Assembly: GCA_965649825.1 (NCBI GenBank)
Contig: OZ287717.1
Span: 75,201-139,200, forward strand
Reading direction: 5' to 3'
DNA: 64,000 nt
DNA from: Penicillus capitatus
Lineage: Eukaryota; Plantae; Chlorophyta
The position numbers and the translations under genes were made by a program. The first letter of the stretch is position 1. Each line of letters begins with the position of its first letter. This document shows positions 15,001 to 62,654 of this stretch, piece after piece. Below the pieces are notes generated by a model. That model was given only the letters and a program-made list of their open reading frames with translations, was not told where the DNA came from and ran no database searches.

Positions 15001-15700
15001 AACCAAGTACGACACCGCCCAAAGCCAAACGAACCTCCGGTGATCGGCATCCGCGGTGTGTCCCGAGGCGTCCCGCACCCGTCTGCGTTGTAGTTTGCCG
15101 ACGGTGGGCCCTCCGTGGGCCGTGGTCTGCCGAAATGTCGAATCCGGAAAGGGCGCGCCACAGCCCGAGAACGCCGCCGTCGGGCTCCAACCAAGGGTCC
15201 GTCGGCATCCACTCGACCCCGCCGACACATTCCCACCCTCGCTGGACCGTGTCGCCGGCGTCATCGTGCACTTCCAGATCGTACTGACAGGCCAGGTTAC
15301 ACCTGATGCGACGTAACCGCCACGATTTCAACTCCGTACGACACCGCCCAAAGCCAAACGAACCTCCGGTGATCGGCATCCGCGGTGTGTCCCGAGGCGT
15401 CCCGCACCCGTCTGCGTCGAAGATTGCCGACGGTCGGCCCTCCGCGGGCCGCAATCTGCCGAAATGTCGAATCCGGAAAGGCCGCGCCACAGCCCGAGAA
15501 CGCCGCCGTCGGGCTCCAACCAAGGGTCCGTCGGCATCCACTCGACCCCGCCGACACATTCCCACCCTCGCTGGACCGTGTCGCCGGCGTCATCGTGCAC
15601 TTCTGCGAGTCACTGACAGGTCAGGTTACACCTGATGCGACGTTGGGTGCTCGATTTCAAAACCGTACGACAGCTCCTGAAGCCGGACGAGCGGCCCGCG
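1..15700. repeat. Tandem satellite array, 329-bp GC-rich monomer, ~48 copies in window, truncated by the left window edge
   Basis: The motif GGTTACACCTGATGCGACGTAAC recurs every 329 bp (ATG at 170, 499, 828 ... 15306; the 15635 copy diverges after GCGACGT). 15635-170 = 47x329+2, explained by two 1-bp insertions (~2240, ~5178). The last monomer decays after ~15,645. Confidence 0.99.
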
Positions 15701-20636: not shown

Positions 20637-22047
20637 ATGGGTCGATCTTGTTCGCGTTGTGCGTTGGAGAGAGCTATTCTTAGAAGACCCAAGACGCGTG
20701 AGCAAGTGCGCTCTAACGCAATGCGTTTATCTTTCTTCGGTGCTTAGACGTCTTCTGCAGTTGTGCCGTTCCTGTTTCTTTGAAGTTTTCGAAGAGGAGG
20801 TGCATCAGACCATTCAGTCATGTCAGCTGTTCACCTCTGGTGAGAGAATAGCGATTGGAGCATCAGGAGGGAAGGATTCTACGGTTCTCGCCCATACACT
20901 GTCCCTGTTGAACAGACGACATCAGTAAAGCAGACGGATGAAAATGCATCCTGGATGTTGATGTCTTGTGTTTGCAGGTATGGACTGCAGCTCTTCTTGC
21001 TTTCTGTCGATGAGGGCATTGCTGGCTACAGAGATGATTCATTGGAGACAGTGAAGAGAAACCAAGAGCAATATGACTTACCTCTGAAGATCGTTTCTTA
21101 TAAAGATCTCTACGGTTGGACAATGGATGAAATTGTCAAACAGATAGGCACCAAGAATAACTGTACCTTTTGCGGCGTCTTTCGACGACAGGCAAGGGAT
21201 GCATCACATTGATGCTTACGGAATCTGTTTTGCTATTAGGCATTGGACAGAGGAGCACGTCTGGTTTGCGCCGACAAAATTGCTACAGGCCACAATGCAG
21301 ACGATTTGGATGAAACCATACTCCTGAATTTCATACGTGGAGACATGTCAAGGTACACCTATCCATCACATCGAGACAGCAGAATGTGGTAAAGACTGCG
21401 ACCTCTGCAGACTGATGCGGTGCACCGATCCTGTCACTGGGACAGATGGAGATATGCCCAGAGTGAAGCCCTTCAAGTATACTTATGAAAAGGAGATTGT
21501 GATGTATGCCTATTTTAAAAAACTGGACTATTTCAATACTGAGTGTGTCTACTCGCCTTTTGCTGCGAGAGGCATTGTGCGAGACTTCATCAAGGATCTG
21601 GAAGCGGTGCGTCCGTCTGGAATCATGGATCTGATCCACTCGGGAGAGCAATTCAGATTCCGTCCAACAAGCGAAAAATCGGTGGACCCACGTGCATGCG
21701 AGCGATGTGGTTTCATATCCAGTCAGGTAAGATGGATGTCACAATGTAGTAAGTACCCTTCTCTGTTCGATCACACCTCGTGCACATTGCTGACGTGATT
21801 GTTCTCTGCATAGACGGTTTGCCAAGCCTGTACACTCCTTGAGGGTCTGAACAAGGCATGCAGCTGTTGTTCTGTGAGGCACTCTTTCTGACATTGTGCT
21901 GCATAGGGATTACCGAAGCATGGAGTGCGCCGCATGCGAGCATGTGAACGGAAGGAACCATTGCCGACTGCTGAATCTGGAACAGCGTGTCCATCATCCA
22001 AGTGCACATGCGAGAACGATTCACAGAGAGAGTCTCCATCTCATTGA
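20637..22047 (+). CDS. CTU1: Cytoplasmic tRNA 2-thiolation protein 1 (Ncs6/CTU1), 7 exons
   Basis: N-terminal CxxC...[15 protein letters not shown]-loop [48 protein letters not shown]-terminal CERCG...[15 protein letters not shown]. Introns 20706-20760, 20925-20977, 21192-21239 (GC-AG), 21353-21410, 21727-21813, 21856-21906 (GC-AG). Confidence 0.96.
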
Positions 22048-24779: not shown

Positions 24780-25880
24780 TCAATGGGTAACCAGACAGGT
24801 ATTCCAACTGGACAATAAACCAAGGGTGCCGCAGATACCGACGATCACAAGACACCCATCTGCTGTCAACAAAGGGGGCACTCCCGAAGAGAAAGAAGAT
24901 TTGGTCCATAATGACATCATGAGACTAGATCCAATGATGCCCAAAGACGAAACGGAGGTCGCTGTGTTCAAACGCTTGAACGTCATTATATCGAGTTCCC
25001 CCTTGCCTGCTGCCTCTTTCATCGCAAGAATCAAGAATGATAGCAGAATGAGACTACTCCCTAGACACCGCACACTGAATGTGGCAAAGCTGTCTACTGG
25101 AGCATTAAACATGAATGTCCATACTGCAACCGGACTGAGAAGGGCGACAGAGGCACACCCTAATAGTACAACGGTAAAAAATGAAAAGAAGACCGAAACG
25201 GGATTCTTTGATCGAAACGTGGCTGCCATGTCGCGTAACATGCCAGATCCAATGTCCCGTATGGCACCGAATCCGTAGAGTGCGGTGAATGCCACGGTGG
25301 GAAGGATTCGTGTGATTGCGAGTACGGTTCCATAGATCCAACTGAAACCTGCACTTTGATAACAGCTCAGCAAATGGAGCGCATCAAAGGCCGCCATGAC
25401 AGACAATGACCAACCAATGCGTTTGTGCACTTGAGTGTTGACTCGATCAAGAGCGATCGCCGTCTGCATGCCATCTCTGTCATTTATGCCATCCGAATGG
25501 GGGTGCTGACTTTCATGCTCTCGGCCAGTGACATCGGTATGAAGAGCAGAGCACCTGTACACCGTGTGAGCAGCTCTCTGGATGCTGTCCATTCTATTCC
25601 CATGCTTTGCTGCATGAAAACCGGAGCAGCGGCCACAGTGGCGGCAAATACCACGAGTAATGCAGAGGAGAATATCTGGTAAGCCGCCAGAGCGACGGGA
25701 TGATCTAAGAACAGAAACGCCTGTAGTAAAAGGACGCCGACGTTGTCTGCCCAGCTCACGTATCACATCCGCCTGTTTAATATCTACGACTGTTTCTTTT
25801 TGTTGCGTTTCCGGTTCGTAAGAAGGGAGAAACCGTTCGGTCTTAAACGATCGGCTGAGCATCTGAAAGGATATCATCCT
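24780..25880 (-). CDS. Uncharacterised multi-pass membrane protein, paralog 3 of a tandem triad
   Basis: Aligns with the 27421-28738 gene (ILPTVAFTALYG vs LMPTVAFLKLYG; KEAAGKGELDIMTFKRLN vs KDAADRGRLGFSTFKTLN) and shares an intron at the same position (MK|GT...CAG|TAIALD). 5' exon structure is uncertain. Confidence 0.75.
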   Translation of the reverse strand, partial: RMISFQMLSRSFKTERFLPSYEPETQQKETVVDIKQADVIRELGRQRRRPFTTGVSVLRSSRRSGGLPDILLCITRGICRHCGRCSGFHAAKHGNRMDSIQRAAHTVYRCSALHTDVTGREHESQHPHSDGINDRDGMQTAIALDRVNTQVHKRIGWSLSVMAAFDALHLLSCYQSAGFSWIYGTVLAITRILPTVAFTALYGFGAIRDIGSGMLRDMAATFRSKNPVSVFFSFFTVVLLGCASVALLSPVAVWTFMFNAPVDSFATFSVRCLGSSLILLSFLILAMKEAAGKGELDIMTFKRLNTATSVSSLGIIGSSLMMSLWTKSSFSSGVPPLLTADGCLVIVGICGTLGLLSSWNTCLVTH

Positions 25881-25968
25881 TTTGTGCGACAGGAAGGGGC
25901 GAGATGCCAGACAGCACGGAGAACCTACGGTCACATGTTACGCAGGTTTGGTGCTTTTTCAGTGAGGC

Positions 25969-27420: not shown

Positions 27421-28738
27421 CTAGTTCCTCTTTGCAGCGATGGCGTTGTAGCCAGAGACCAGCGCCAACGATCCAAAGATGATGAATTTCGTTATCCAGC
27501 CAAACTGTGTCATCAACTCTGTGTTCTGTTCAACGATCACTTTCGTGGCAGCAGCAGCTGCTTTTGAGCTGGCGGCCGCCGCCACTGCCGGTACCGGTGT
27601 GGCGGCTGCGGTCACGCGGGCAAGGTAAAGCCCGTTGCCGATCTTGGCAATAGCCGCCGCGCACAATCCGATGTTCAGCGTCTTGAATGTGGAGAATCCG
27701 AGACGACCTCTGTCAGCTGCGTCCTTCAAAGTGAAACAGACGATCGATATCAAGAACATCTTGCATGCCACGCATCGAATGAAAAAATATGAAAAGGAAT
27801 CAGCACCGGGTGCCAGTATAGCAGACGCCATTGTGCTAGGAGAAATGCAGGCACAGACAGCAACGATCATGGTCACCACGGTGAGCAGGGAATAGAAGAC
27901 AGCATTGAGATTGTCTGGCTGGAAGACAGAACTGATTCCGGATAACACGCCAGGAATGATATCCGAAAGAGTGCTCGTGCCATACAGCTTCAAGAAAGCG
28001 ACGGTTGGCATCAGCTGCATGATCGAAGAGATCCACGTTCCGAGATTCGGCGGCGCCAATCCGTGAGCTGATATGTAAAAGAGTTTGAAGCCCATGATGC
28101 CCAAAGTCGAGAGAGCAAGAGTGAAGGCCAATCGTTTATACGTTGGCGAGTCCAATCGATTCGCCGCCACGGCAGACTACGAGCAGAATATTGGGTATCG
28201 ACTTAGCTAGGAGGCACCTGACCTGCATGCAGTAGGCTACGGAAGATGCGACGAGTAACATCGATGCGCCCGAACGATACAGCAGATCGGCGATGGGCAT
28301 CGGTGTGACGCCAAGAATCCTTTCAATCACCTTCGGGGCAGCGACAAAGACCATGACATTGAGCACAAGCGTAAGAGCGGTGAAGAGCTGATAGTTTCCA
28401 CGACCCAATGTATAGTCTACGGAGCCAAGCGTCTCCTTGAGAGACCGTAACAGAGTTAGGTGTATGCCGTACCGACAAAGCTACTCGAGCCTGACGCATC
28501 CTCCGAAGACTGCGCTTCTGCCGCGCAGATGAAGTCCTCTCGGTGAACGGAAGGATGCAGTGGAAAGGGCATGTAGGAAACGGAAGGACGCATCGGTCTT
28601 GCCGGCAAGGCGGTTCGTGGAAAACAGCCGGCGGTGTTTCCTAATGTACAACAGTCATACGTCTTCCCCTTTTTCGACAGGAATGCTCTTACTCGGAACA
28701 GCCATTGCGGCTTTTGTCGTATTCACGGACAACAGCAT
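27421..28738 (-). CDS. Uncharacterised multi-pass membrane protein with predicted plastid transit peptide, paralog 1
   Basis: Spliced model MLLSVNTTKAAMAVP|RNTAGCFPRTALPARPMRPS (Arg/Ala/Ser-rich leader)...|YTLGRGNYQLF...CMQ|SAVAANRLDSPTYKRL...DAADRGRLGFSTFKTLN...AAKRN*. Several hydrophobic helices. Confidence 0.75.
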
Positions 28739-29960: not shown

Positions 29961-31492
29961 CTATCTATTGCAGACACGCTTTGTGACGCTGACAATGTCT
30001 TCGACCTGAGGAAGCGCCATGCGTTCGAGATTGGCAGCGAATGGCATCGGGATGTCACACCCAGTCACACGTTCCACTGGACTGTCCAACTCATCAAAGC
30101 ACGCTTCCATAAGATAAGCCGAGATCTGAAACCACACCCACGCACACTCTACTCGAGATGCGACACAACAAGTGACCCGCACCTCGGCACCGATGCCGCA
30201 TGTCGGCCATCCTTCTTCGACCGTAATGGCTCGATGTGTTTTCTTGACGGAGGACACGAGGGCGGAGTGGTCGAACGGACGAAGCGACCGGAGATTGATG
30301 ACCTGTCACATCACAAGCACTCCCTTCCCGCCGCCCATTGGTCGTAGGAGATGGCACACCTCGCAGCTGATTCCCTCCTGTGCCAGGAGTTCTGCTGCTT
30401 GCACGTTGTAGCCAACCATCTTGCCAAATCCAATCAATGTCACATCCGTCCCCTCTCGCATGATCTTGGCTTTGTCCAACGGCAGTGTAAAATCAGGATC
30501 CAGCACATTCTGTGCCACGGGGAACTTCTGTCCATACAGGATCTCGTTTTCGAGAAAGACGACGGGATCTGGATCGCGAACAGCTGCCTTGAGCAGCCCG
30601 CGACTATCTTCCGAGTCATACGGTGCGACAACCTTGAAGAAAAGAAGAGGGCCGCCGTTATCGCATCGTTCATCCACTCGATACCGTCTGAGAGACAGGA
30701 GGAAAGCGCGAGGGTACCTTTAGTCCTGGAACAGAACAGTACCAGGCAGCAAAGCACTGGGAGTGTTGAGCAGCGACGCCGGCGGCTGCGCCGTTTGGTC
30801 CTCGAAAGACGATGGGACAATGAATCTGCCCAGCCGACATATACAGTGTCTTGGCCGCCGAGTTGACGATCTGGTCGATGGCCTGCATCGAAAAATTAAA
30901 CGTCATAAATTCCACAATGGGTTTCAGGCCAGAGAACGCAGCTCCCACGCCAATTCCCGTAAACCCAGCCTACACAACCCCTGTCAAACAAGTCCATAAC
31001 CGTCTTTGCGAGATGGACCTCAGTAATGGGTGTATCTTTGACACGCTGCGGGCCATACTTCTTCAGTAACCCAGCTGTGATCTGACCACGACGATGAACA
31101 TCGATTGCACTCCTGAGCGCCACCAGAGCCTGTGATGCTCACCTTGTAGGCTCCGTTGTATTCTGCCACCTATGCAGGCAACACACACGGTGGGTGTATT
31201 CGGAATACTCGGACAGAGGCTGACCTCTTCGCCCATGATGAACACGTCTTTGTCTCTGGCGAGTTCTTCATCGAGGGCAGAGTTCAAAGCTTCTCTCACG
31301 GTGAGCTGCTCAGACAGAAGGATTCCGTCAGTCCATGATTCCACTTTTCGATGCAGAAACCTCCGTGGTGGCAACGGAACGGGTGGCGATCTTCGATACA
31401 TCCGCCCAGCGACCCAGAACCTTAAACGAGAGTGAATACGGGCAGAATCGGAGGACATGGAGTACTTGGCCGAGTCTCGTGAGAGAGCGCAT
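29961..31492 (-). CDS. PDHB: Pyruvate dehydrogenase E1 beta subunit, mitochondrial type (8 exons)
   Basis: [94 protein letters not shown] introns join all segments; short N-terminal presequence. Confidence 0.97.
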
Positions 31493-32155
31493 GGTGACGG
31501 AAGGCAAATAAATGCAGAACAGTCGTAATGATGGCCTTAAGGTCAAATCATGGCATTCGATGGTCAATCGATTGGCATTGAACAGTCAGCGCGCTGCGCG
31601 ACGAGATCGTGGAAATGGAAAGGATGTATCGTGCCTCGAAAGGAACGCCGCCGCCGCCGGCTCTACCCCTCGCGTCGCTTCCTCTGCCTCTTTCTGTCGA
31701 TGCCCTCGCTTCCTTGCTTCATCTCCTGATCCGATGGATTCCACCAATGGCGGTGATGGACAGCCTTACCACATGACGCCTCGCTGACGCATGCCTCCGT
31801 TCGGTTTCTCTATTTAGGAACAGGGGAAGAGCCGCAGGCGCCGACGTGGGGTTTGATGACGGGTTGGCGAATGATTGCACAAGATGTGATCAACGATCTG
31901 GATGGAGACAACGAAGCATCCATACGCAGCGAAGGCATGCATGCATCGATGACGTGACAGGCCTAGCGAAAAGGGTCTATCTATGTGCTGCAGTGAATCG
32001 CACAACCAACACCGAAGCAGACGATTCCGTTGAGGATACTCTGCGAGCCATGCAGTCGAGTCGCTTGAAATCTGTCACCGCGAAGAGCGGGTGCGAATGC
32101 GGTAGGCTCTTTCTACAGGTCTGTGACGCGTGTAGCGTGCAGGGAGAATTTCTAT

Positions 32156-34085
32156 ATGGACTACCAGATGATGGAAGAAATCGGCAGCGGTGCGTTTGGC
32201 ACAGCCATCAAGGCAAAACGCCGCTCGGATCAGGAAACAGTCGTCGTCAAGGAACTCATCGGCCGAAAGATGACAGCCAAAGACATCCAAGAGGTACAGC
32301 AGCACTTTTCCATACCATGGACAGCGAAGCATGTCTTGCGATCCGTGGCAGGCCCAGAACGAAGTGAAAGTACTGGCGCATTTGCACCACCCTAACATCG
32401 TTCGCTACTACGATTTCTACAGCGGCAGTGGGAGAATGCACATTGTTATGGAATTCTGTGAAGTACCTGCCGGCCGCACTCTGTTAGACACCACCACGAA
32501 CACAAGTGGATTGGACAGGAAGGCGATTTGAGTTCGTATCTGAAATCGAGAGATGGCCAACTGCTGGAAGAGAATGAGATTATGATGAAATTTGTACAGG
32601 TCTGCTTGGCATTAGACCACACGCACAGTCAGGTAGGTCATCGGAGACGGTTATGGTGGCAGTCGTCCGCAGGGTTCTGCGTTTAGGGAATACTCCATCG
32701 CGATCTCAAAACGCAGAACGTCTTTCTGTCAGCTCACGGTATTCTGAAGCTTGGCGATTTCGGCATTTCGAGGATCATGGAAGGAGAACAGTCAATGGCA
32801 CGATCTATGGTCGGCACACCGTACTACCTATCGCCAGAGATCTGTGAGGTGACAGATGAGGGACGCCCTTTGCAGGAAGACAATCTCTGTGCCTGCAGGA
32901 CAAGCCTTACGGTCCAAAGAGCGATGTCTGGTCACTCGGTTGTGTCCTGTATGAATTGTGTATGCTGAAACACGCCTTTGAAGGACAGTCGCTGCCAGTA
33001 CTGATTCTGAAGATTCTCAGGTGGACAGCTTCCGTCAATATCTCAGTGGTTATAGATGTCTTGCATGGCTGGACAGTGGAACGGTGCCAGAGATTCCATC
33101 CAAATACAGCACGCACTTGACTGCCCTCGTCAAGCGACTGCTGTCTAAGAATCCCGACCAGCGTCCATCGATCGCCGAGATCCTCAACTTTGACTACGTC
33201 AGGTCCGGAAACAAAGAAAACGAACACAGTGGTCAAACCACAGCCCTTTGTATGCAGGACCCATTTGCAGCACTACGGTGCCCATATCCACTACACAGTC
33301 GTCCGAAGGAGAGAGTCTTTCCAGCGATCGCTCGAGCCCTTCGAGCTGCCATCTCCGGCAGATCACGAGATCGGGATGATGCGACATCGCAGATCGACTG
33401 AGCAGTCTCTCACTGGAGCCATCCATCGAAAGAGCCGTCCCTTTGGCGTCGACCAACAAGAATTGGATCAATGGGTCGAGATCGAAGATGACACGACGTT
33501 TGAGATCGCCCCTTACCGATACTACACTCAGGCAGCCTCTTCCGCCCTCCTGGCGGAGATCAAGATTCGTTATCTCTATGCCGTTTCAGGCGGAGGACGT
33601 TTTTCTCAACAAACTGAATCTGAGATCGGTACAGACGGAGTCATTTCCGCTGCCAGAGACACCCCTTGCCGCAGAGTTCAGTGCCAACATCGCCAAGATC
33701 ACGGCATTCAAGCGCAAAGTCTTTGGAGATGCGGCCCGAGGAAGGCACCGACCGTCATCGCATCATCGTCCACGCGTTTCTAAGGGCAAGGAAGTCATGG
33801 CCCCTGTGTTCGAATACGTGTCGGATGAGGAGCACCACGAAATGGTGTTTATTGAATCTGAGGAGGAGAGCGACACAGACACGGTGGAAAACATGAAGTG
33901 CGACCGACATACGCAGTCCTCTTTCTGTATGGCCATATCTGTGCCGCAGGGATATGGCTCAAGGCTTGACCAGCGTCGTTTCGCAGATTCAGAACATCAT
34001 GAAAGCACCTTCTGTCCAGATCGGAGCCTCGTGGCTGAACGAAGTGGACCTGCTTCCGCCCTTAGACAATCACCAAGAAGAGTAG
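32156..34085 (+). CDS. NIMA-related (NEK) Ser/Thr kinase with C-terminal tail (~9 exons)
   Basis: [81 protein letters not shown]. The HRDLKxQNVFL/GTPYYLSPE combination is NEK-typical. Confidence 0.93.
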
Positions 34086-34276
34086 AGAGGCCAGCTGTTC
34101 TCACAAAAGCCTGCGCCTGATCGCTGCAAACACTTCTCTGTCATGACAGATTGTTTTAAGAAGACCCTTAAAGCTGTGGCACAGCTGTTCTTTGTCACAA
34201 AAGAAATGTCTTAGGTGTAGAGAAAGGGTTTTATGTTCTGCATCTCCTTGGCTCTATCATACGTTTCTCGGACATT

Positions 34277-36105
34277 CTATCGCCTGTCTACTAAGTATTG
34301 AGATGCTCGATGACCTGTCTTTCCTAAGGGGGCGGCAGACTGATCGGAATCTGTCGTGTTGAGCGCCGCTTCCCTCGATCTAACAGGAATAGCCGAATGC
34401 GGTCTCTGCCAGAAACACACGCATTGAGATCCCAGAGCGCTAAGTGTGGCAGGGCAGTCATGACGCACGGGTCGGAGTTTACGTCGGCCTCCTGTAATAA
34501 TCTCATGCTGTCTCCCCACACTCGTCCTCCGCCTCTCACTCTGAAGCTCTCTATTCACAATCTCGACTCTCTCTTTCAGGTGCGATGTCTCTCTGGCGTC
34601 AGCGTTTGTCTGTCCGTGCAGGAAGGGTCCCACATTCAGCCAGCCATCATCGAGTGAACATCTATCGCACTTTAAAAGACGGAACACGTTTGCCGAGTTT
34701 TCGATTCTCCTCCTTCAATGCAGTGTTCTCTCGTCTCAGTTCGATGCATCGCATGTCACTCTTTTTCAACTGAGTCAGTCACACATGTGTACATAACGCC
34801 AAGATGCGCCGAATCTGGGCCCACTTTAGCAATGTCTTTGGCGTGCAGGAGCTTCATCTGCTGCATCTCTTTCTCAAGCATCCCTCTTCTCTCCTCTTCC
34901 CCTTTGCACTGCTCTAAGCTCTCTTCCAGTCGAAGTCGCTTCTCTTCTGAACGCTGCAAAGACGTAACAGTCCCATCGCCGTCGGAGATCGATCTATACC
35001 TGCAGTTCTGCCAGCAGTGTCCGGTACTTCTCTTCCATCTCTTTTGCCAGCTGCATGCTCATGCCTTTCAACACATCCCGTCCACGTTTCGTTTCACTCA
35101 GCCTGACCACAAACGCATCCCCCTTTGTCAAATCCCTTCCCCTTTCTGAGATACTGTTGCTTGGTTGTCACGTGGTACTGCCTCTCAGATTCCAGCGTCT
35201 GAGCCAGACAGGCGGCATGCTCTTTCAATGCCTCAATCTTGGACACGTACGCTCTTTCTCTCTGTGATCGAACATTGCTAGAATCCTGCTCTGCTTCGAT
35301 CTTGAGACATCCTACGGACCATTCTGGCTCATCCGATCCACGACACGCATCTCCCATCAGACCTTGGACTGCCAAAGCTGTTCCAGATGTGCATGGAGTG
35401 CACCCACGACCACCAGAATGCTCTCTTCTCTCAACGCACTCTTCTCCAACGCGATCTGATCCGCCGCGAGATGCTCCCGCTGCACGTGACACTGAAAAAC
35501 AGCCACTCTTGTGAGATCCGCAGATATCTGCTGGTCGCGACCCTCATCTTCACAAACAGCTCTCGAACGGCATCCTCGACGGCGTCGTTCGTCTGGAGTC
35601 GATGTAGCAATGCCTTTTGATCCTTGCAGTACTTTGCCATCTGCAGCTCCAGCCATTCAATCTCTCTCGCATGCGTCTCTTCTGATTGTTGGCCAACAGC
35701 CATACATAAACTCAGTTCATGCTCCAGGAGCTTCGATCTATCGCAATGCCAACGATTATGACGCCGCATGATCGCATGGGATCGACCAGATTCCACCTTT
35801 GCCTCTCCTCGTGCAACAGAGCTGTCACATCGTCATCATCCTCCCTCCTCTTCTCCCTTTCTACGCAGCATCATGCATCGCGCCATTCCCTTATCCCAAT
35901 GATCCCCGAAGCACGTCGCCGTGTTGGAGACGGGGGACGGCACGCGGATGTTCTGTTGGGAAGGATCGATGGCCGCCTCGCCGACCACGTCATGTCGCGC
36001 CGTCCGCGTGAGCGATCCTGCTCGATCTTCGATTTGACACCGGACGTCATTGTCGTTACTTTGATGGGACGATTCTGGAATACGACACGACAGCCACCTT
36101 CCCAT
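34277..36105 (-). CDS. Multi-exon coiled-coil protein of unknown function
   Basis: E/K/R/Q-rich segments (EREKRREDDDDVTALLHEERQR | SKLLEHELSLCMA...; RLEESLEQCKGEEERRGMLEKEMQQMK) separated by short GT-AG introns. Ends approximate. Confidence 0.55.
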
Positions 36106-36216: not shown

Positions 36217-39200
36217 ATGGCACTGGATGAAAGTGTCCCTCTCTCATCCTCATATCTCCAAGCATCGACGATGCCTCCGTTCAAAGAGAAGGACAAAGAG
36301 ACATTCTATCTGACTGTCGTCTCTTTTGACGCCGTCTCTGCCGAGGGCGCGTCACGAATGGTATCGAGGGACGATGGCATCGAGAAATGGAGTGCTCATA
36401 TGGTGTGATGGTCGGCAGAGTGGAGATGTGCTCGATCTCCCCGAAGACTGTCCTTCGTGTTTCGGAATGCTGACGCTGCGCGAGATCCCTGAGGATGCCT
36501 TGGCGTCTTTTGACATGAAACTGAATCGGCAGGACATTCGTGTATCGTTCAGGTGCAAGCGAGCCCACAACCAATGTCGCCTCGCGTGACTACCGATGGC
36601 TTTGTGTTAGAAACTACGGCGCGGCGTTACTGAATCGCACGGAGTACAGGAATCTGAGATGGTTTCATTTTGCTGCGACGGAGAACGTGATGCTGAAAGG
36701 ATGTCTTCTGAACACCGTCTCCTCATCCGAGAACAGACACCTGTTCAAATCGCTGATGGATGATCTCACTGTGTTTATGCAACCAAGTGCGCCGCCATCT
36801 GCATCGCTCGACACACAGGCTTCCTGCACACGCGTGTCTGTCTTCAGGCGAGAAGGAATCGTGGTATCTCATTGTTCCCTTGACAGAAACTGCCGCCGCT
36901 TGCTTTGTCCGACAAGGGAAGCGTCTCCTTGGCAGTAATCCGACGCCGACGTCACATCATGCATGGATGCATGCTTCTGTCTGCAGTGATCTGCCAGGAA
37001 AGGGCGTTGCAAGCAGTGGCTGCGCTTCGCAACTTCGCCAGACCTGGTGTGACACAAGCCTCCCTGGATGATCCGTCCTCCGTCTTCTTATCGTCCTACA
37101 ACGATGCGGACTATGTGATCCACTCTCCGCAGCGACGTGCAAGGTATGGCCTCCTCCACAGATGCATCCAGGATGCCTCTCTCGTGTTCCCTCAGATTTT
37201 CGGATTCTTTTCCGAAGAGAAGAAGCAGAAAAGCGGATCGACAGTTCTCCACCTATGCCGAGTACTTTACGACCAAGCTGGGCTTACCTGATCTCGATCT
37301 CGATCAACAGCTCATCGGCGCACAGAGACCTGCAAAGGTGCTTCCTTAAGCGATCCTTCCCGCAGCCTCAACCGTACTCTGTGCTTTCGCACAACAGCTT
37401 CCGGTTCTCAGAAGCGCCCGTGCACTTCTCGATCCACAAGCCCTGGAGTTGCGCCATCCGGCACACACGGTAACACCCTCTGCATGATTTCTGCGTGGTT
37501 GCCACGTGTCTGTGTCGACAGAACGGGGATCACTGTGCCTTCGTTGTTCCATCTTTGCTTCTTCTGCATCCATTAACTGCCAAGACGATTCGGGCTGCTC
37601 CTGTGTACTATGCCACCTGCTGGATGTTCGAATCTCAGCTGCGAGTGGCCGAATTGCGTGACACCTTGACAACAACACCCAAGCAAGCAACGGAACACCC
37701 GACAGAGGACCCAACGTCAGCAGATATCCACCACGCATAGACACCATCACTGTTCGTGGACTTTGGCAGTGCGTCCTGTCCTCAAGTGGATATGGCCCTT
37801 CTCTTTGAAGCGGTGACATTCAAAGGCCTCGTGGAAAGAAGACACTGCGAGAAACTCGAATTCATGGGTCGAGTGCAATACCCGTTCTCTATCGATCGAT
37901 CTCTTTGGTTCTGTGCCGTAGGTGATATGATTCTGAAAGTCATTGCAACGTTGTACACCTGCCTGACATCTCCGGAGAATTCCGATACGCTCATCGAAAC
38001 CCGATACAGTTTCCTCTCCAATGCTGCCCTGGCCAGACGATGTGTATCGACCCATCTTCACAAGTACTGGCCTTAGATTCGTGGCACGCCAGAAATGCAT
38101 TGGCGTTGCAGATATATCCGACACGTGCGACTTGGAAACGATGCCTGGTGCCCTCCAGGGACATCTGCCATCAAGGACTTCTGCAGCAGGTATGAGATTC
38201 TGTGGCATGAGGAAGAGTGGAAGCCCGAGAAAGTCGAGACCCACAGTACCCTGGGCGCCCTTGATCCTAATGATCTCACACAGCTGTTGCAGATTTCAAG
38301 CTGCTGGCAGACGTTATCGAGGCCATTATCGGCGCCTTCTACATGAGTAGTGGCCTCGAGGGGGCTGTCTACAGCATCCACCGTCTGGGCGTTGCTCCTG
38401 TGCATAACCTATACCGAGCCATTCGTACGCACGACCCCTCTGCTGGTCCACAGCATCCAACGCGGTCTGTGTTAGAACGTCATGGAGAAGATGCTTGGCT
38501 AACGAGGGCATTGATGGACGCATGCTCTTCTGCTGACAAAGCAACGAGCCTATCCACCAACACCACACCCCATCTCCCCATCGATGCGTCCCTTGAAGAT
38601 GACATCGCCGGTGCATGAGACATGGTCCTCCTAGGCAGCCGCCCTCATAGATCCCTCGTGTCTGTAGCCATTGAAAGAGTGATAGGTTACACATTTAAAG
38701 ACAAGTCGCTGGTGGCCATGAGCATGAAGAGAAAACAGGAGGCCATCAACGGCAGTCTCTTCAATTGGGAACGTATGGCGTTCCTTGGCGATGCGCTCAT
38801 CGATTTCCTGATCACGTGGCAGCTCCACGAGAGGAAAGCCACAGAAAGCGTTGGTGCGTTCTCTTCCACGGCATTCCTTTTCCCTCGGTCCTCTCCTCAG
38901 GCGAATGGACCAGTTGGAAGCAGAAACGGTACAATCAGGAACGCATCTGCCAGCTCTGTATCTCCCTCGGTCTCCATCGACACCTGCGTTATCCCAACAA
39001 GACCATCCATGAACAGATTCAAGAGTACATTGGACAGGTGTGAGATGTCACTCTTTTCTGCTGTCTAAGGTGTGCTTCTGGCAGCTGAGTCTCTCTTCCG
39101 ATGCGTCGATTTATGGAGAGGGAATGGAGGGGACACCCGTTTTACTGCATTTTTCATTTCAGTGTCTCGTCACATCGACTTTTCTAGACAACGGTGGCAG

Positions 39201-39869
39201 TCTGGCACAACTCCGGAAGATCTGGGACCCGTTGATGGAACCTCTGTACACTACGGAAGGCGATCAGCCGATAAATCCCGTTCACCTCCTCATCGACCAC
39301 TGCCAGGTCCTGTTCATCATCGCCTCGAATACCACGCCACTCCTTTTCTCTTTCCACGGATACAGAAACAGAAAAGGACGCTGCAGTTTAAGTACAGAGA
39401 GGACAGTGAAGAGGTCGATGCGGATAAGAGCCCTACAGAGAGGGAAGATGTGACAGAAAAGGATGTAGAGGCGTCATCCCCGTTGCCGTTCTGGAACGTC
39501 GCTGAAGACAAGATTCCGTATGACGATGACATCTGCCAGGGGCGTCGACTGAAAGAACTGTCCATCTGTGAGCATCCTTGTCGCCTTTTTACAGCGATCT
39601 CCATTTCGGCTGCTGTAGATCGTCATTGCGCCGCCTTCAGTTGCACAGACGACAGCGCAGATGAGAAGGGAGATGGCGACACGATGTGCCTCCCGATCAA
39701 CGACGCGCATGTCTATGTCAATGCGATCATCGATGGAAACTGCGTTGCAACAGGGATGGCCAGATCCGAGAGATTGGCCAGAAGAAGAGCCGCCAGTCTT
39801 GCATTGAGAGTACTGGGTGTCGCCGCTGAGGATATCCACACAGACTCGGTCGATCCACACAGCACTTGA
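36217..39869 (+). CDS. DCL: Dicer-like protein: Platform-PAZ-RNase IIIa-RNase IIIb(degenerate)-dsRBD, no helicase/DUF283
   Basis: Platform-like FYLTVV...PEDCPSCFGMLT; PAZ-like TYAEYFTTKLGLPDLDLDQQLI; RIIIa EKLEFMG|DMILK and LLADVIEAIIGAFY; RIIIb IERVIGYTFKDKSL...WERMAFLGDALIDFLIT...FLDNGG...PINPVHLL; dsRBD end ATGMARSERLARRRAASLALRVL; TGA 39867-39869. Confidence 0.9.
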
Positions 39870-40843: not shown

Positions 40844-43105
40844 CTAAGCAACCAATGTCATTTTTCCTTTCTCATTGTTTTCCTTCTCCAGTTGCAACAC
40901 AGCCGCCGCTCCTTCAAAATCGCCATTCCTCTCCAGCGCCCTGGACAGGATCATATAGGCTGCATGATTCATCTGCTGACTGCTGCTGCTGAACTCGTCA
41001 AAGAACTGATAGATCAGATCAATGCGTTTGCACTCCCCTGCTGCCTGGATGAGATTACAGAAGACAGGCAGATCTATCTGGATTTGTTTCTCCTTCAATT
41101 CATTGTAGATCTGCAGCACCTTATCGATGTCGCGGTTCACACCATAGCCATGGATCAGGGCAGCATATGATCTGGTGTTCACCACCACATCGCTTTTCTT
41201 GTACTCTTCAAACAGCTCCTCCATCTTCTCCACCTGCCCCACTGTCCCTGCCAGATGCATCAAGGACGTGTAGGTGTGTTTGTTTGGATAAATGCCGACT
41301 CCCTTCATCTCTTCCAACAGCTTCATTCCGTCTTCCAAGTCGCCCAAGAGGTCGCATATGTGGATCATGGTCGTGTAGATAACGACGTTCAGATGCATAC
41401 CCCGTCGTTTCATCTCGTTAAAATATGTCCAAGCGCTCCGCACCCTTTCTCGGTCCTCTGATCTCGCACACATGTGTAGGATTAAGCTGTAACTCCGAAT
41501 GGGAGGAAACTTATCGTCCTGTCGCATCGCTGCTAACACTCCATCCATCGCTTCCCAGTTATCGCTATTGGCACAGGCTCGAATCATGGCAATGTAGCTG
41601 CCCAATGTGACCGGAAACGATAACTTTTGCATTTCGCTCACCAGATCAAGAATGCTTTGCAGTGCAACCTTCCAGTCTTTGATATAACGTACATCCGAGT
41701 GGTAGTCCAGAAAATACTTGTACACCGATGCCTGCATATGCGATCGGTTCTCTTTGAGCTGACCAAAGAAGAAATTGGCACGATCGAGTTGCCTGGCATT
41801 CAGGAAGATCTGAATGAGATACGAGAGCATCTCCCCCGTCACATAGATCCTGGCCGTCTGCATTTCTTCGATGAAGATTTCGGCGATGATAGCTGCCTCG
41901 TGCTCCAATGTCTTCGCACCCACCAATCCCCTCAGCAGAGCGATATAGATATCCCGCGACACAGCGGTCTCTCTTTCTCTCATAATACACAGCAAGCCAA
42001 AAACGCTTTTCCAGTCATCTTTTGAGAGAAAGAACGCCATTAACGCATCGTATGTTTCCACCGGCACCACGGGATTATTCTTCTCGATCTCATGATAGAT
42101 CCTCCAGCACATTTTCGCGATCTCGTTCGATTCTCTGACAGTCCGAGGCTTCGAAGACTCTCGAATGATGGACAGATAAAGGGCCGTCTTGACAGGCATC
42201 TTTTTTTCCACCATCTCATTGATATATTGTATGGAGAGATCCACATCTCCTCGTCTCAGAGCGATGCGTATCAAGGCACGGTAGGTATAGGCATCGGGCT
42301 CCAGTCCTTCATCCTCCATCTGTTTCATCAACATCTGCACCTGCACCAGGCCCTCCGTGGTATTCCGTTGCGGACGCGAAAATCCACTGATGAGCGTATT
42401 GTATGTCACGCAATCGGCTTTGATGCCTCTGGACTTCATCTCATTCAGCGTCTCGACGGCTCTGTCCAGTCCAGTATCCGCGGCAATGAATACCTGGATC
42501 AGTGAGTTGTAGAGGATGCGGTCGATGGTACACGTCTCGCTCTTTTCTGCTTCCTCCCATAGCTGCAAGGCCCTGTCAACGTCCTTCCGTTTCGAACAGA
42601 CATTCAGCATGATGGAGAACGTGAAGGCGTCTGGACTCAATCCTTCTTCCTTCAGCTGTTTGTAATAGTCCCAGCACTGTATAAACTGTCCCTTCACTTG
42701 AAACCCTTTGATCATACTGTTATACAGTGCCAGCGGTCTGTCTCTGAGCGTTATGAAGATTCTCTCCGCTTTCCACGTCTCGTTTTCGTTGACGAGCTTC
42801 ATCACTCTTTTCTCAATCTCACTCAATGGCCTTTCCGGTGAATGAGACGCGGGAACGTCAAGGACCTACACATATATCTTCCCCCCTCTGTCCGAGACCG
42901 AACGACGAGCGTTTACAGGAGATGGTGCAAGATCGTCTCCCTCGCCTGCCACGGAACGAACGACAATGCTGAGGTAAGGCGCTGCCCTGTTCAGAGGGGC
43001 ACGCTGAGAGATGTGGGAGATGCGCCGATTTCGGCCATCGCGTCGTGATCGGCCAGTCAGAACGGGAAGGCGCCTGACAGACGCTGTGGGCAGACGAGGC
43101 TGCAT
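40844..43105 (-). CDS. P-type pentatricopeptide repeat protein, probably organelle-targeted
   Basis: 660-aa ORF with many 35-aa PPR motifs (PDAFTFSIMLNVCSK, ADCVTYNTLISGFSR, NVVIYTTMIHIC, PNKHTYTSLM). Upstream Arg/Ser-rich exon (MQPRLPTASVRR...VVRSVA) joinable by a short intron 42869-42831; 5' end tentative. Confidence 0.9.
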
Positions 43106-47599: not shown

Positions 47600-49377
47600 T
47601 CATATGCGTTTGGATCTGCGCACGAGTTGCATGGTGCGACTGTTCGGTTTAATGCTTCGACGTTTCATGGCTGCAACGGTCTCGAATACCCGGTGTCTCT
47701 GACCGTCATAGATATACCACTTGATGAGAGCGTTATACGTGTGAACATTTGGGTCAATTCCTCTCTCTTTCATCTCGTTCATGCATTCCAGGGCGCCGAT
47801 CTCGTCGTCGACGCTTAAGTACACCTTCACGAAGGACGTGTACACAACAACGTTCGGTTTTATGCCTTCTTCCGCCATATAGCTCATCAGCTTCTGTCCA
47901 GATCTCAGATCCTTGGCACAGGAACAGGCAACCAGCAGAGAGCTGATGATCTTGCAGTTGAGTCGAAGACCACGCTTTTTGAGGAGATCGGCGTAGTAGA
48001 AACAGTCCCGGAGATACTGCCGCACGTCTGTTTCGGGCGAGTGCTTCGCGCAGCAGTCGATCAATGTCCCGTAGGTAAAGATATCCCAACGCACGCCTCT
48101 CTTCTCCATCACTGCTGCAATCTCCTTAGCCCGTACATAGTTGCCCATTTCGGCACAGACTTTGAGCAGGGAGTTAAAGGTGTGCGTGTTTGGATCCACG
48201 CCATCCAACTCCATATCATCCAGCACCTGCGCGCAGCAATCGAACAGCTCTCCCTTCGGTATCCTTCTCCCGTTCTTCGCATAGCCATCGAGCATCATGC
48301 TATAGGTGATGATATCTGGCTGCACTCCCTCCAGCTTCATCTCCTGAAAGACGGACTGTGCTGTCTGCGTGTAGTGCACAGACAAACACATCTTGATCAA
48401 CGTGTTGTATGTCTGGATGTCACACTTGAGGCCTTTCTCAACGATTTCGCGCTTGATCTCTAAACCTTTCTTCACCAAAGCGTCGCCCGTGCCAAATGGA
48501 TTCAGTTCTGCATAGCCGTTCATCAATGTATTATAGGTAACGACTGTTCTCTCCAGCTTGAGTTTTCCTATTTCCTCGAAGACCTTGAGCGCTGTCTCTA
48601 GACTTCCAGCTTTGATGCAGGTCCGCATCAGGGCGTTCATTCCAGCGGTGTCAGGTTCAATGCCTAAGGATCGAAACTCAAACAGCACTTCGACTGCTTT
48701 CTTCAGATCGCCCTTGGCAGCACAGCCTGCCAACAGTGTACACTCAGCGTAGGTGTTGGGTTCGATCTTCGCCTTTCGCATCTCTTGATACCACTCGAAC
48801 ACTTTGTCCCCTTTGTTCAGCAGATAGTACCCGCGCATCATAGATACGTAAGTGAAGGAATTTGGTGCCACTCCTTTCTTCTCCATCTCAGTGAAAAGGC
48901 GCTCCGCTTCGCGCATGTTTTGAGAAAGGGCACATTCTTGTATTCTTTTGGAGTAGTACTTTACATCCATGACCGCCGCATTTGTCTTCTCTCCAGCAGG
49001 CTCCTCCTTCTCTGCGACTGAATCCAAGTCGATAGAGGCATCGCCATCGGGTAGGGAAGGATCTGGAAACGGAGCAGTGGATGTGTCGACGTCCACTCTT
49101 GCCTGAAGCTGCAGAGGACATCGAAGAGGAGAGATATTCTGTGTCGTCGTGACCTTGTGTGTTTTCATACGGTGTGTATTGGAATGAGAAAGCGACGAAC
49201 CGATCTGCTTCCGTCTCTCCGTGTATCGCGTCGCATGGCGAATTCCGTGTACCTGTGCAGACGACGTCTATGTCGTTTTCTTCGCTGTTGGCAGTGATGG
49301 CTTACGGAGAAGGAAGATGGGCGGCGACAGGAAAGGCGTCTGCCGTTGCAGCTCATCTGTCCGCCGAGCAGAACCAT
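47600..49377 (-). CDS. P-type pentatricopeptide repeat protein, probably organelle-targeted
   Basis: 522-aa ORF with PPR motifs (PNSFTYVSMMRGY, PDTAGMNALMRTC, PDIITYSMMLDGY, PNVVVYTSFVKVY). Arg/Ser-rich upstream exon joinable at ACC|GTATGA...CTGCAG|. Confidence 0.9.
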
Positions 49378-49588: not shown

Positions 49589-52539
49589 ATGGAGGAGGAA
49601 CTGCGTTATCGCGGTAAGAAAGAGAGTCCTGGGAGTTCGTCTGTTGCTCCAAGGGAAGACAGAGAACCATCTCCGGTTAGCGAGCATGCTGAAAAACGAC
49701 AGACCCGAGGCACAAAGACTTCCTCCAGCGATAAGGGTCTTATTAGAAGGATTATTCGATGGAGTTCTCGGTTGCCGCAGAACATCCGTCGGGTCGCCTC
49801 AACGATAAATGACCTCCTCCAAATTCGTTGGATCGCCACCATCGACGACACCATCAGCGATATTGCTGTCTGTTTTGAGAATGAACGTGTTCATTCAACC
49901 TTGGTCAATCTATCCTGGAAAGTCTTATGGGTGAGCTACCTGTCTGCTATTGTCCTTTTGATTCGGGATATTATTCTTGTGGAATCTGCGAAGGGTGTCA
50001 TAGCTTACACGCGGGTATTGCAGGTTTTTTGTGTTCAGGCAATGTTCCCTTTCGCCTTTCTGCTGTTGGTTTATCTCACTGTTCAGTTTGTCAGCAGTAT
50101 GAAACATCTGGGAGAGTTCTTCCTCGGCAAACCGATATCACAGTACATCAATGATTTAGGAACATGCCTTCTGATCGGTTGGGCATTGCAGATTCTCCTC
50201 GATTTATCAGGGAAGCCTAATACAATTCTGCTGCAAATGCTCATTGCTATGAGCATAGCGACTTTGATCTCCAGTACCCTGGTATTTTTGGTGGTTTGTC
50301 GAATGCTCACAGTATTTTCTAATCGTTGGAGGTTCACTGCGACGGGCATGACCTATCTTTTTGCTTTGTTTTACTCCTACCAATTAGTCAGCCTGATCAC
50401 AAAGGCTTTCGCCAATTGGGGATTCTTTTTTCCTCTATTGGCAAAAATGATTTATCGTCTAAATGAGAGAATATTAAAGGAAGAGTCGAAATCAGATGCC
50501 AGGCAACAGAAGCAACACATTGCACACGAATTAATGAAAAGGGAAGAGACAGCCGTAATGCAGCAGAAAGAAGAACTCCATATGTCGATGACAAGACTCC
50601 AGATGATACTGCAAGGAATGCTGAATAAAATAGGGGAACTTTTGACACAGATGCATACGGATTTCAAGACATGGCAAGAAAGAATTCTGGCTGATCCAAA
50701 AAGATTTGAGGCTGATCCAAAAAGATTTGAGGCTGATCCAAAAAGATTTGAGGCTGATCCGGAAAGAAGTCGGGCTGATGTAGAAATAATTCGGGCTGAA
50801 CGGGCTGATGTAGAAAGAAGATTAATTCGGGCTGCAGTAGAAAGAAGATTAATTCGGGCTGAAATAGAAAGAAGTCGGGCTGAAGTAGGAAAATATCGTA
50901 AGGCTCCATGCCAAATCCGCGAAACACAAGAATCACAAGAGACCACCCAGAGTCTTGCAAAGCCTCTGGTACAAAGTTCAAAAACTCCGCCAGCCCATCA
51001 GGGAGAAATGGCACATGGTGTTCCGAAATTGAGTGAATCAGCATTGACATTGTTGCCTGCTCGCACGTCAGATGTCAGTCTGGATAATCTCTTTCTTCAC
51101 GCACCATCATCCACTAACAATCCAACCGAAATAGATTCTCCTACGCCTCTTAAATGTCTAATCACTGAGACAAGCGGAAGCCTGCCATCACAGAGAGCCC
51201 TTCTGCATGACGTAATGTGTTGCTCCATGAAAAGAGGAAACAAATGCACTGTTTGTGGGATGCCCATAGGTCATAGAAGGGCTGATGGTGATTCACAGAG
51301 AAGGCTGTGTTCATGGTGGATTAACGCCGGAGAGTATCGTGTGGAAGAAGACCACACTACGTTGGGCAATCGTTTATCCGATTTCCGCAACAGCATCGAG
51401 TTCATCTCCATCTGAATTTTCGACAGACTATACAGCACCAGAGATTCTTCAAGATGCAAACGATCCTCCTGATCCAAGTGCTGCAGTGGACATGTGGTCT
51501 CTCGGCATCATTGCCTTTGAGCTTATTGCAGGTCCGTCGCTCTGTTGACGACCACCTGTATACATAGCAGCTGCTCGTGTTCCCAGGCACACGGTTTTAT
51601 GGATCTCCTGCACTGCCGGGTCCGACTAGTCTGACAAAGAAAGCCATAGCAAGACGGATCAGAATCATCCAAAACTGTGACGCAAGTGATCTGTTGTTAA
51701 ACTTGATTGTACTCGAACCCGAGTGTCGATGGTCTGTCATGAGAGCTGCCATGAGTTCATTCTTTACGTCCGATCAAAATACCTCTAATGCAGTAAATTT
51801 TCAGAAGCAGGTCTTTAGCCCTTCAATATGCCATTTCTTTGATCTATTCATACAGGCACAGAGTACAAGGAATGATAAGTGCGACATATGCCATCTGAGA
51901 AAGAGCGTTTTTGAAGCACAGGGCGACGAACCTGTGTTGATATCGATCTGCATAGAGCATTACTATGCGCCCAGAGATCCTGCAGATCTATTTGGGCTGT
52001 TAATGGGTCGAGCAGCACCCATGGATCTGGATGCATTCTTCCATCCTAGAGATCCTGTCTTTCTTTTACACATTGTACAGAAGTACCAAATCCGTGTGTG
52101 CTTGAAGAGTTCTGAAAAACTCCCGTCAGACATACGTCTGGATCATGTATACCTCAGTCTTCGGGATGGCGAAAGAAAGGAACTGGAAGTCGTAAGCTTT
52201 CAGATTGCTGACGACGGATTTGAAATGGTCGCTCTGCCGGATTTCGGGAGCTTGCCTTTCAAGAAACACCAGAGGATACCATCTCCTCATCTTAAACATG
52301 AAGAGGATTATGTGCACCTTTTTCTCGACATGGAGATATCTGTAGACTCGGAGGAGTCCTTCCTTCCCTCCATCAAGCTCTACAGCTCATTGATCAGCAA
52401 GATGGTGTCCATGCGTGTATCTCCTAAAAGAGATTTTAGAAAGAAGCTCGAAGAATCGAAAGCGAGACTGCCACGGTGGATGCACAGCCATCTCCGCGGA
52501 GCCTGCTTCGTCCTCGAAACTGACCTATTCGATGTGTAA
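49589..52539 (+). CDS. Multi-TM + coiled-coil + C-lobe-only pseudokinase + beta-rich domain protein (cassette copy A), 3 exons
   Basis: Exons 49589-51211, 51270-51531, 51587-52539; both introns are GT-AG and at the same positions as in copy B. Kinase-like VHGGLTPESIVW...STDYTAPE...VDMWSLGIIAFELIAG; no N-lobe motifs or DFG visible. Confidence 0.75.
50690..50885 (+). repeat. Coding tandem repeats: 21-bp unit (ADPKRFE x3 plus ADPER) followed by imperfect RA(D/A/E)xxxRLI-type units
   Basis: GCTGATCCAAAAAGATTTGAG repeated at 21-bp period from ~50,690, then CGGGCTG...GAAAGAAG units, all in frame in the 608-aa ORF. Confidence 0.9.
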
Positions 52540-62200: not shown

Positions 62201-62654
62201 TCAGATTCGTATTCGCATGGAGTGTCATGGAGTGTCTCTTTCGACTGCCGTGCAAGTGATTCATGTGAAGCTCACACCTCCAGATGCCGAAAGGCAAGAA
62301 TTGGATGTAATCGAAAGCCATAGCTTTGAAGACGGATTTGAAGTGCTCGCTTTACTGGATCCGAGTAGAATGCACTCCAAGAAGCTGTGCAGCCTTACGC
62401 CCGATTCTGGCTACCAAAATAAACGATACGTTCACCTGTTAGTTGAAATCAAATTCTCCGTGGATCCATCAAACAACACCTTCGTTATCCTTAAAGGCAC
62501 TCTGATCTGCAGAGTGGTTTCAGACAATGTTGAGTTTCCAAAGCGGAATTTTGATGAACAACACAAACGATCAGAAGCAAGACTGCCATCCTGGATGCAT
62601 CGCTCTGTTTTCGGAGCGTCTTTTGTTCTAGATAGTGTTCCATACATCGCATGA
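59296..62654 (+). CDS. C-lobe-only kinase-like protein flanked by two copies of a beta-rich domain (cassette copy B), 6 exons
   Basis: Exons ~59296-59770, 60073-~60811, ~60868-61019, 61063-61323, 61377-61640, 61696-62654, all phase-compatible GT-AG. VHGDLRPENIVW...STDYTAPE...IDMWSYGIIAFEVITG; C-terminal domain homologous to that of copy A. Confidence 0.75.
59826..60000. repeat. Perfect 24-bp minisatellite (CATCCATGCCGCTATACGGGCAGT) x7.3, intronic
   Basis: 175 bp = 7 full units + CATCCAT, lying between donor C|GTGAGT (59771) and acceptor CTAG| (60072). Confidence 0.97.

Follow-up and report, generated by a model that had tools for sequence, protein, structure and literature searches.

Dicer is defined by two cuts from two RNase III domains. 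Such domains cut only as dimers, each of them cutting one strand, and within Dicer the RNase IIIb domain cuts the 5p arm and the RNase IIIa domain the 3p arm. In bacterial RNase III, exchange of the last catalytic Glu for Gln abolishes cleavage but not RNA binding, and this classic form has served for co-crystals. Loss of the IIIb site is familiar mainly from human cancer, as a lesion by which the strand output of microRNAs (miRNAs) is skewed. The metal-binding residues of IIIb in the human enzyme are E1705, D1709, D1810 and E1813, and mutants of this metal site lose 5p miRNAs but go on producing 3p miRNAs (PMC6695490). When one subunit of an RNase III dimer is dead, as in bacterial heterodimers, double-stranded RNA (dsRNA) is nicked (PMC3867540, PMC9508840). 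The KREN/KREPB pairs of the editosome likewise contain a single active site and are thought to cut the mRNA strand only (PMC9508840, PMC3867540); catalytic/non-catalytic RNase III heterodimers of this kind have been described as known, to date, only from the editing complexes of kinetoplastids (PMC9508840). Among Dicers themselves, P. tricornutum DCR1, T. pseudonana DCR and Trichoplax DCR2b have been reported to vary in both IIIb catalytic motifs (PMC4791657). The diatom Dicer-like proteins are described as having two RNase III domains, with a dsRNA-binding domain (dsRBD) in P. tricornutum and PAZ not among the listed domains, and Giardia Dicer consists of PAZ and two RNase III domains (PMC2724275). 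Here, a Dicer-like gene of the chlorophyte Penicillus capitatus is described, in which the two RNase III domains differ in their catalytic residues. The gene lies in a stretch of 64,000 nucleotides of contig OZ287717.1 (assembly GCA_965649825.1, positions 75,201 to 139,200 of the forward strand), hereafter called the window, and coordinates below are positions in the window.

The product of this gene is probably a conserved, helicase-less, Dicer-type ribonuclease of a chlorophyte lineage, with RNase IIIb now a non-catalytic pseudo-nuclease domain and with cutting of one strand from a single site as the predicted activity. The protein is clearly homologous to Dicer and the Dicer-like (DCL) proteins, and two canonical features are missing from it: a full set of four acids in IIIb and the module of helicase and DUF283.

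Catalytic residues of the two RNase III domains

The gene occupies the plus strand from 36217 to 39869, with 17 exons; its 16 introns are of the GT-AG type, measure 47-61 nt and end in YAG throughout. Its product is 931 amino acids long (2796 coding bases, stop codon TGA at 39867-39869). Two RNase III domains were recognized in this one polypeptide by the Pfam family Ribonuclease_3 (PF00636), with an E-value of 1.9e-24 over two stretches for the full protein and of 6e-25, again over two stretches, for the C-terminal half. The catalytic tetrad is complete in IIIa (four of four: E399, D403, D500 and E503). IIIa motif 1, CEKLEFMG/D, is split at the slash by the intron 37868-37921, and motif 2, LLADVIEA, lies at 38301-38324. 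One of the four tetrad positions in IIIb still holds an acid (D641); the other three are A637, F730 and Q733, so that Ala, Phe and Gln stand where canonical Dicers have Glu, Asp and Glu, and motif 2 reads PVLLHFSFQ.

The placement of these residues was examined by alignment. With the IIIb region as query, HMMER aligned motif 1 ('wermaflgd') to 'yqRLEFVGD' or 'RLEFLGD', and motif 2 ('PvllhfsfqcLvtstfldnG') to 'PKVLGDIVESIAGAIFLDSG', among others. No gaps occurred at the IIIb motifs against five solved structures, namely DCL1, DCL3, DCL4, mouse 3c4b and human 2eb1. The two domains were also compared over the 24 columns whose conservation reaches 75% or more among 24 canonical Dicers and DCLs (alignment of Bollmann et al., PMC4791657). 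IIIa retains 19 of the 24, including all invariant ones. IIIb retains 11, or 10 in the ortholog L002 described below, and among its losses are the invariant E, D, E and N, the K of 'PK' and the 'GA' that follows motif 2. The residues that define the fold, FLGDA and TFLD.G, are kept, and both D641 and the invariant His that precedes the lost Asp position are conserved. This distribution of kept and lost residues indicates that the loss in IIIb is specific to the active site.

Several ways of recovering an acidic motif were explored and rejected. Across all three plus-strand frames of 38668-39400, the pattern [DE]xx[DE] occurs only as DQLE, EGME, EHEE and DRCE, and in none of them do frame and spacing to FLDNGG fit. 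An alternative acceptor at 39162 (run ttttcatttcag) would create an intron of 125 nt, an outlier for this gene, and would delete motif 2. The peptide that it removes, SIYGEGMEGTPVLLHFSFQ, is conserved in frame in L002 with many differences at third codon positions only, and it aligns with the G.G....P.VL segment of the plant proteins; DxxE is absent under either splice. The frame-0 string GVLLAAESLF at 39069 was considered as a relic motif, which would need a frameshift and has the wrong spacing. Conversion of the Ala, Phe and Gln codons to Glu, Asp and Glu takes at least four base changes and no insertion or deletion, so a simple base-calling or assembly error is not credible.

An earlier note on this DNA, made from the letters alone, had called the gene a Dicer with an intact IIIa and a dead IIIb. 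Every string that it quoted from the gene was recovered at its place, and its account of the four acids of IIIa and of the three substitutions in IIIb, with D641 as the only surviving acid, agrees with the residues given above. The gap-free alignment of motif 2 to plant DCL was reproduced by HMMER against the five structures, the profile alignment that it proposed matched both domains at the E-value given above for the C-terminal half, and its statement that no splice restores DxxE is upheld by the three-frame scan. The equivalence that it drew to human E1705, D1810 and E1813 is borne out when the HMMER alignments with mouse and human IIIb are read together with the published residue assignments (PMC6695490).

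Conservation in two relatives

Relatives were found by an exhaustive HMMER search with the contiguous open reading frame (ORF) 37741-38073, in which the first half of IIIa is read without a break across the in-frame intron. The search returned two short ORFs from unannotated assemblies, and these led to the contigs hereafter called L001 and L002. L002 is a Logan contig of 26.8 kb from run SRR33785045, with a GC content of 41% against about 52% in the window. It carries an intact ortholog of about 868 amino acids and about 45% identity to the window protein, with 17 introns of 30-70 nt by spliced alignment. Its exons match those of the window gene one for one, apart from a single extra intron in the linker. 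L001 is a metagenome scaffold of 1.7 kb from ENA and holds a partial relative, from the PAZ-like region to IIIa, that is 48% identical to the window protein; over this stretch its introns are at matching places. Two scans of JGI metagenomes found no relative. A word-indexed protein search returned one distant Dicer for the C-terminal half and none for the alignment of the window and L002 proteins.

The window and L002 also share gene order. In both, a transketolase-like gene on the minus strand, a NEK-like kinase gene on the plus strand and the Dicer-like gene follow one another in the same order and orientation. The corresponding positions are 30000-34300 in the window and 4277-8180 in L002. 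Between 34.3 and 36.2 kb, the window holds about 2 kb of extra sequence relative to L002, including a minus-strand ORF, starting near 35710, that L002 does not have.

All three sequences (window, L002 and L001) keep an intact IIIa tetrad, with QRLEFLGD and LADVVEA in L002 and ALEFVG/D and FADVVEA in L001. IIIb could be seen in the window and L002, and in both it is without three of the four catalytic acids. The L002 motifs are KRHLAFLGD and PFALHTTFQALIATTFLD, with Ala replacing the first Glu, Thr the Asp and Gln the second Glu. The Ala codon is GCG in the window and GCT in L002, a difference at the third base only, and many of the codon differences in the motif-2 exon are likewise confined to the third base. 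Several of the residues that have replaced conserved ones in IIIb (Y, Q, H and Q) are identical in the two proteins. Thus the substitution pattern reported for the window was found in part: Ala and Gln are common to both proteins, and the Asp position holds Thr in L002, not Phe.

Sequence identity between the window and L002 proteins is 51% in IIIa, 47% in IIIb and 30% in the linker that joins them, and values for the other regions are given in Table 1. The proportion of nonsynonymous differences (pN) is well under that of synonymous differences (pS) in every domain. In the RNase III domains pN is 0.33-0.37 against a pS of 0.82-0.90, and for IIIb alone the values are 0.37 and 0.85. The ratio dN/dS (nonsynonymous to synonymous rates), proposed as a test in the earlier note, is not quantifiable because pS lies above the Jukes-Cantor limit; pS is saturated and partly inflated by the difference in GC content. 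Since IIIb is conserved nearly as well as IIIa and better than the linker, the comparison indicates that the dead IIIb domain is old, that it is itself now conserved and that it is under purifying selection, in agreement with the claim that simple decay does not account for it.

Gene model, domains and surroundings

The introns were curated by hand and then checked by protein-to-genome spliced alignment against L002 and L001; they replaced the models from a minimal-intron path search, which were biologically implausible. The ATG at 36217 is the first in frame downstream of a stop codon at 36136. Similarity to L002 starts already at 36196, which is 21 nt 5' of this ATG, so the position of the N-terminus is known only to within some tens of residues, and a further 5' exon upstream of 36217 may exist. 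Two introns, 37868-37921 (54 nt) and 39568-39618 (51 nt), are multiples of three without an in-frame stop, and their retention keeps the frame. The intron of L001 at the position matching 37868-37921 is likewise in frame and free of stops, which explains why ORF callers gave ORF P0122.

Table 1 Features of the Dicer-like gene (window positions; residues of the 931-residue product).
Feature	Position	Strand	Remarks
Exons 1-6	36217-36360, 36419-36552, 36611-36786, 36848-36934, 36987-37143, 37196-37337	+	
Exons 7-12	37398-37469, 37522-37715, 37770-37867, 37922-38063, 38112-38245, 38293-38610	+	
Exons 13-17	38668-38853, 38901-39037, 39085-39306, 39366-39567, 39619-39869	+	
N-terminal region	36217..36933	+	residues 1-180; 42% identical to L002; no Pfam family
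PAZ-like region and connector helix	36934..37788	+	residues 181-375; 51% identical to L002, 48% to L001
RNase IIIa	37789..38402	+	residues 376-530; best Pfam Ribonuclease_3 stretch residues 396-514; full tetrad
IIIa E399	37858-37860	+	GAA
IIIa D403	37924-37926	+	GAT; just after the 54-nt intron 37868-37921
IIIa D500	38310-38312	+	GAC
IIIa E503	38319-38321	+	GAG
IIIa-IIIb linker	38403..38597	+	residues 531-595; 30% identical to L002 over 43 alignable residues
RNase IIIb	38598..39258	+	residues 596-765; without three of four catalytic acids
IIIb motif 1, WERMAFLGD	38766-38792	+	A637 = GCG 38778-38780; D641 = GAT 38790-38792 (retained)
IIIb motif 2, PVLLHFSFQCLVTSTFLDNG	39136-39195	+	F730 = TTT 39151-39153; Q733 = CAG 39160-39162
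C-terminal dsRBD-like region	39259..39866	+	residues 766-931; 38% identical to L002 overall

The domains outside the RNase III core are less readily recognized. In the N-terminal region, the motif FGMLTLREIP pairs with FGLLTLREIP of L002; this region is possibly platform-like. Residues 235-360 of the PAZ-like region align with residues 1237-1345 of Arabidopsis DCL1, inside one HMMER alignment of 558 residues. The label PAZ-like rests on this alignment and on conservation rather than on a family model, since Pfam PAZ has no match in the protein at E <= 1. The C-terminal region carries a variable acidic insertion of about 90 amino acids, placed after the first helix and before the last strand-helix unit of the dsRBD-like fold. 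Pfam dsrm matches residues 882-914 with the C-terminal half of its model, below threshold (E 0.011-0.03, 15-17 bits against a cut-off of 23), and the unit VNAIIDGNCVATGMARSERLARRRAASLALRVL pairs with VDVIVEGVVISTGTADSEKAARRDAAVEALRIL in L002. Of the intact PAZ, IIIa and dsRBD that had been proposed for this gene, IIIa therefore stands; for PAZ and dsRBD the word intact was too strong, the one being without a Pfam match and the other a sub-threshold match beside the insertion.

No Pfam match to a DExD/H helicase, to DUF283 or to a zinc finger was obtained in the protein. A tblastn search with a helicase-bearing Dicer fragment found nothing upstream of the gene. Upstream helicase exons were rejected: the genes upstream are the NEK-like kinase and the minus-strand ORF, and as this kinase is the next plus-strand gene in both the window and L002, there is no room for such exons. 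No Dicer-like paralog was found within the 64-kb window.

The remainder of the window is mixed in content. Positions 1-15643 are filled by a satellite of 329 bp in 47.5 tandem copies of 95% identity, which runs past the left end of the window and has a GC content of 66% (about 50% in the remaining window) and a strongly negative GC skew. An Mlo-family protein is encoded in two ORF pieces at 17991-20010 (minus strand). The cytoplasmic tRNA 2-thiolation protein Ctu1/Ncs6 follows at about 20640-21700 (plus strand) and is 70-77% identical to its counterparts in green algae and plants, with Hariotina reticulata (77%) and Ostreobium quekettii (75%) as the nearest named matches. Two paralogous hydrophobic ORFs at 24780-25934 and 27421-28170 (minus strand; 30% identity, E 3e-24) probably encode membrane proteins and match no Pfam family. 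Beyond the Dicer-like gene lie two intronless genes for PPR proteins, at 40844-42826 and 47600-49168 (both minus strand), and an ORF of 608 amino acids with tandem ADPKRFE peptide repeats and no Pfam match (49589-51415, plus strand). Paralogous intronless ORFs occur at 51577-52539 and 61560-62654 (plus strand; 36% identity, E 8e-60), also with no Pfam family. A perfect tandem repeat of 24 bp in 7.3 copies at 59826-60000 encodes AIHAAIRAV repeats at the end of an ORF of 235 amino acids (59296-60003, plus strand).

Proposed single-site cutting, its alternatives and comparison with known systems

On the basis of what is established for RNase III and Dicer, one mechanism is the most likely. The IIIb domain would be retained because IIIa can form a processing center only as a pseudo-dimer with IIIb, and IIIb would still help to hold dsRNA. 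With a single active site, one strand would be cut per binding event. The cut would fall in the strand that is anchored by its 3' end in the PAZ-like domain (the '3p' arm), and its distance from this end would be fixed. A duplex would become a nicked duplex, in line with the nicking that the earlier note put forward as one possibility. From a hairpin, the expected products would be a 3p small RNA and an uncut fragment comprising the 5p arm and loop, as with the human DICER1 RNase IIIb hotspot mutants. It is possible, and is put forward tentatively, that a green-algal clade has fixed such a 'half-Dicer', a PAZ-anchored enzyme with a single active center that measures from a 3' end and cuts that strand only.

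Several points weigh against single-site nicking. The pairing of IIIa with IIIb is assumed from homology to Dicer structures. Pfam does not recognize the PAZ-like region, which makes end-measuring uncertain. The IIIb state is seen in two species only, and with dS saturated omega is not quantifiable. A canonical second Dicer or a partner nuclease elsewhere in the genome could alter the functional reading. Finally, diatom Dicers with a degenerate IIIb are taken to be competent for RNA interference (RNAi), so that a dead IIIb need not mean nicking only (PMC2724275, PMC4791657).

This last point bears on the alternative that survives best, in which both strands are cut after all. Here two molecules would act together, either by pairing of IIIa with IIIa in trans or with one molecule at each duplex end, or the protein would work with a second RNase III partner, and IIIb would have been re-purposed for binding or regulation. 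RNase III domains dimerize readily, the single-domain Dicer of budding yeast has been described as a possible homodimer (PMC4791657), and the diatom proteins just mentioned are treated as bona fide RNAi enzymes (PMC2724275, PMC4791657). The conserved replacement residues Y, Q, H and Q suggest a new constrained role for IIIb, as this alternative would have it. The conserved core motifs of IIIb and its 47% identity between orthologs nevertheless fit the usual role of an intramolecular partner, and no gene for a partner RNase III was found in the window or L002. We consider double-strand cutting of this kind unlikely, though worth keeping in mind.

The protein might instead be a non-enzymatic, dsRNA-binding scaffold, the second possibility of the earlier note, or a regulator, in which neither RNase III domain cuts in vivo. 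Pseudo-enzymes with RNase III domains are known, for example KREPB4-10 (PMC9508840), and a dsRBD-like tail is present here. All four IIIa acids and every invariant IIIa column are however kept in three organisms despite about 50% divergence, which is hard to explain without catalysis and makes a pure scaffold distinctly improbable.

Continued catalysis by IIIb through non-canonical residues is more doubtful still. Single departures are tolerated at this site, as all four listed Drosha IIIa domains have NxxE as their second motif where DxxE would be expected (PMC4791657), and the conservation of D641 and of the invariant His before the lost Asp position could be read in the same way. Against this, three of the four metal ligands of IIIb are gone, including both ligands of motif 2, and the neighboring conserved K, N, G and A are replaced. 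The lost Asp position is itself not conserved between the orthologs (Phe and Thr, respectively), and in the human enzyme single substitutions at these positions abolish IIIb cleavage (PMC6695490). A catalytic IIIb is thus very improbable.

A pseudogene, or an artefact of assembly or annotation, is scarcely credible: protein-database searches turned up no annotated protein for the gene, but its ORFs are intact across 16-17 introns in two species with saturated synonymous sites, pN is well under pS domain by domain, and the same substitutions recur in independent assemblies of different source, which effectively excludes pseudogene decay and assembly error.

That a dead IIIb has been kept next to a live IIIa over a long period of divergence shows that a one-site state can be selected for. 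If the proposal of single-site cutting is correct, the 'half-Dicer' would define a natural pathway of small-RNA or RNA processing with 3p-only products or nicked duplexes. It would correspond, as a product of evolution, to the hotspot state of human DICER1 and, within one molecule, would parallel the editosome nickases. It would offer a system for asking what a single-site Dicer produces, why the dead domain is needed and how strand-asymmetric small RNAs originate. A PAZ-anchored RNA nickase that measures from an end could also serve as a reagent. More broadly, the small-RNA machinery of under-sampled chlorophytes departs from the models drawn from Chlamydomonas and land plants.

Among solved structures, the best relative of the protein is Arabidopsis DCL1 (7eld, E 2.6e-31), with residues 235-792 aligned to DCL1 residues 1237-1754 in one alignment, followed by DCL3, DCL4 and then animal Dicers. 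The protein is collinear with plant DCL1, DCL3 and DCL4 (7eld, 7vg2 and 9kby) over a stretch that begins in the C-terminal half of their PAZ domain, takes in the connector, IIIa and IIIb and ends where their dsRBD starts, and it shares with plant DCLs the G.G....P.(V)L segment before IIIb motif 2. Unlike them, it is without a helicase, DUF283 and a PAZ domain detectable by Pfam, its RNase III core is 26-32% identical to theirs, and its IIIb tetrad is incomplete where all plant DCLs in the comparison set have it. Identity to the cores of land-plant DCL1-4 reaches at most 32% for IIIa and 28% for IIIb, no higher than to the Dicers of Naegleria and Dictyostelium, and on these values the protein is judged not to be an ortholog of DCL1-4. 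In Chlamydomonas DCL1-3 and in Volvox DCL the IIIb motifs are canonical (PMC4791657), so a dead IIIb is not a general trait of green algae.

In being short and without a DExD/H helicase, the protein resembles Giardia Dicer, Tetrahymena DCL1 and oomycete DCL2. It differs from these minimal Dicers in that we found no report of lost catalytic residues for them, and no close sequence relationship to them was found. A degenerate IIIb is shared with the diatom and Trichoplax Dicers. Trichoplax DCR2b (EKLAFLGD and GDTFAAV) has the same Glu-to-Ala exchange in motif 1 but keeps the Asp of motif 2 (PMC4791657). With IIIb identities of 10-13% to the diatom Dicer-likes and 22% to DCR2b, these are not close relatives, and for their IIIb variants we found no report of conservation of the dead state or of biochemistry. 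The uniqueness implied in the earlier note was accordingly overstated (PMC4791657). The novelty is moderate: degenerate natural IIIb motifs were already published, and the evolutionary maintenance of a dead IIIb is added here.

The trypanosome KREN1-3/KREPB6-8 proteins offer a parallel in working principle only, with one catalytic and one non-catalytic RNase III domain. No specific homology between KREN/KREPB and the Dicer-like protein was detected beyond the RNase III fold. The editosome arrangement consists of two polypeptides with zinc-finger and RAM/PUF-type modules in a mitochondrial complex, whereas the algal protein is one polypeptide with PAZ-like and dsRBD-like regions. The functional model is provided by the human DICER1 IIIb hotspot mutants, in which the residues equivalent to those changed here (E1705, D1810 and E1813) are altered. 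The human mutations are somatic, affect single residues, are associated with disease and occur in an otherwise canonical enzyme; in the alga, several residues are changed in the germline, and the changed state is shared across species.

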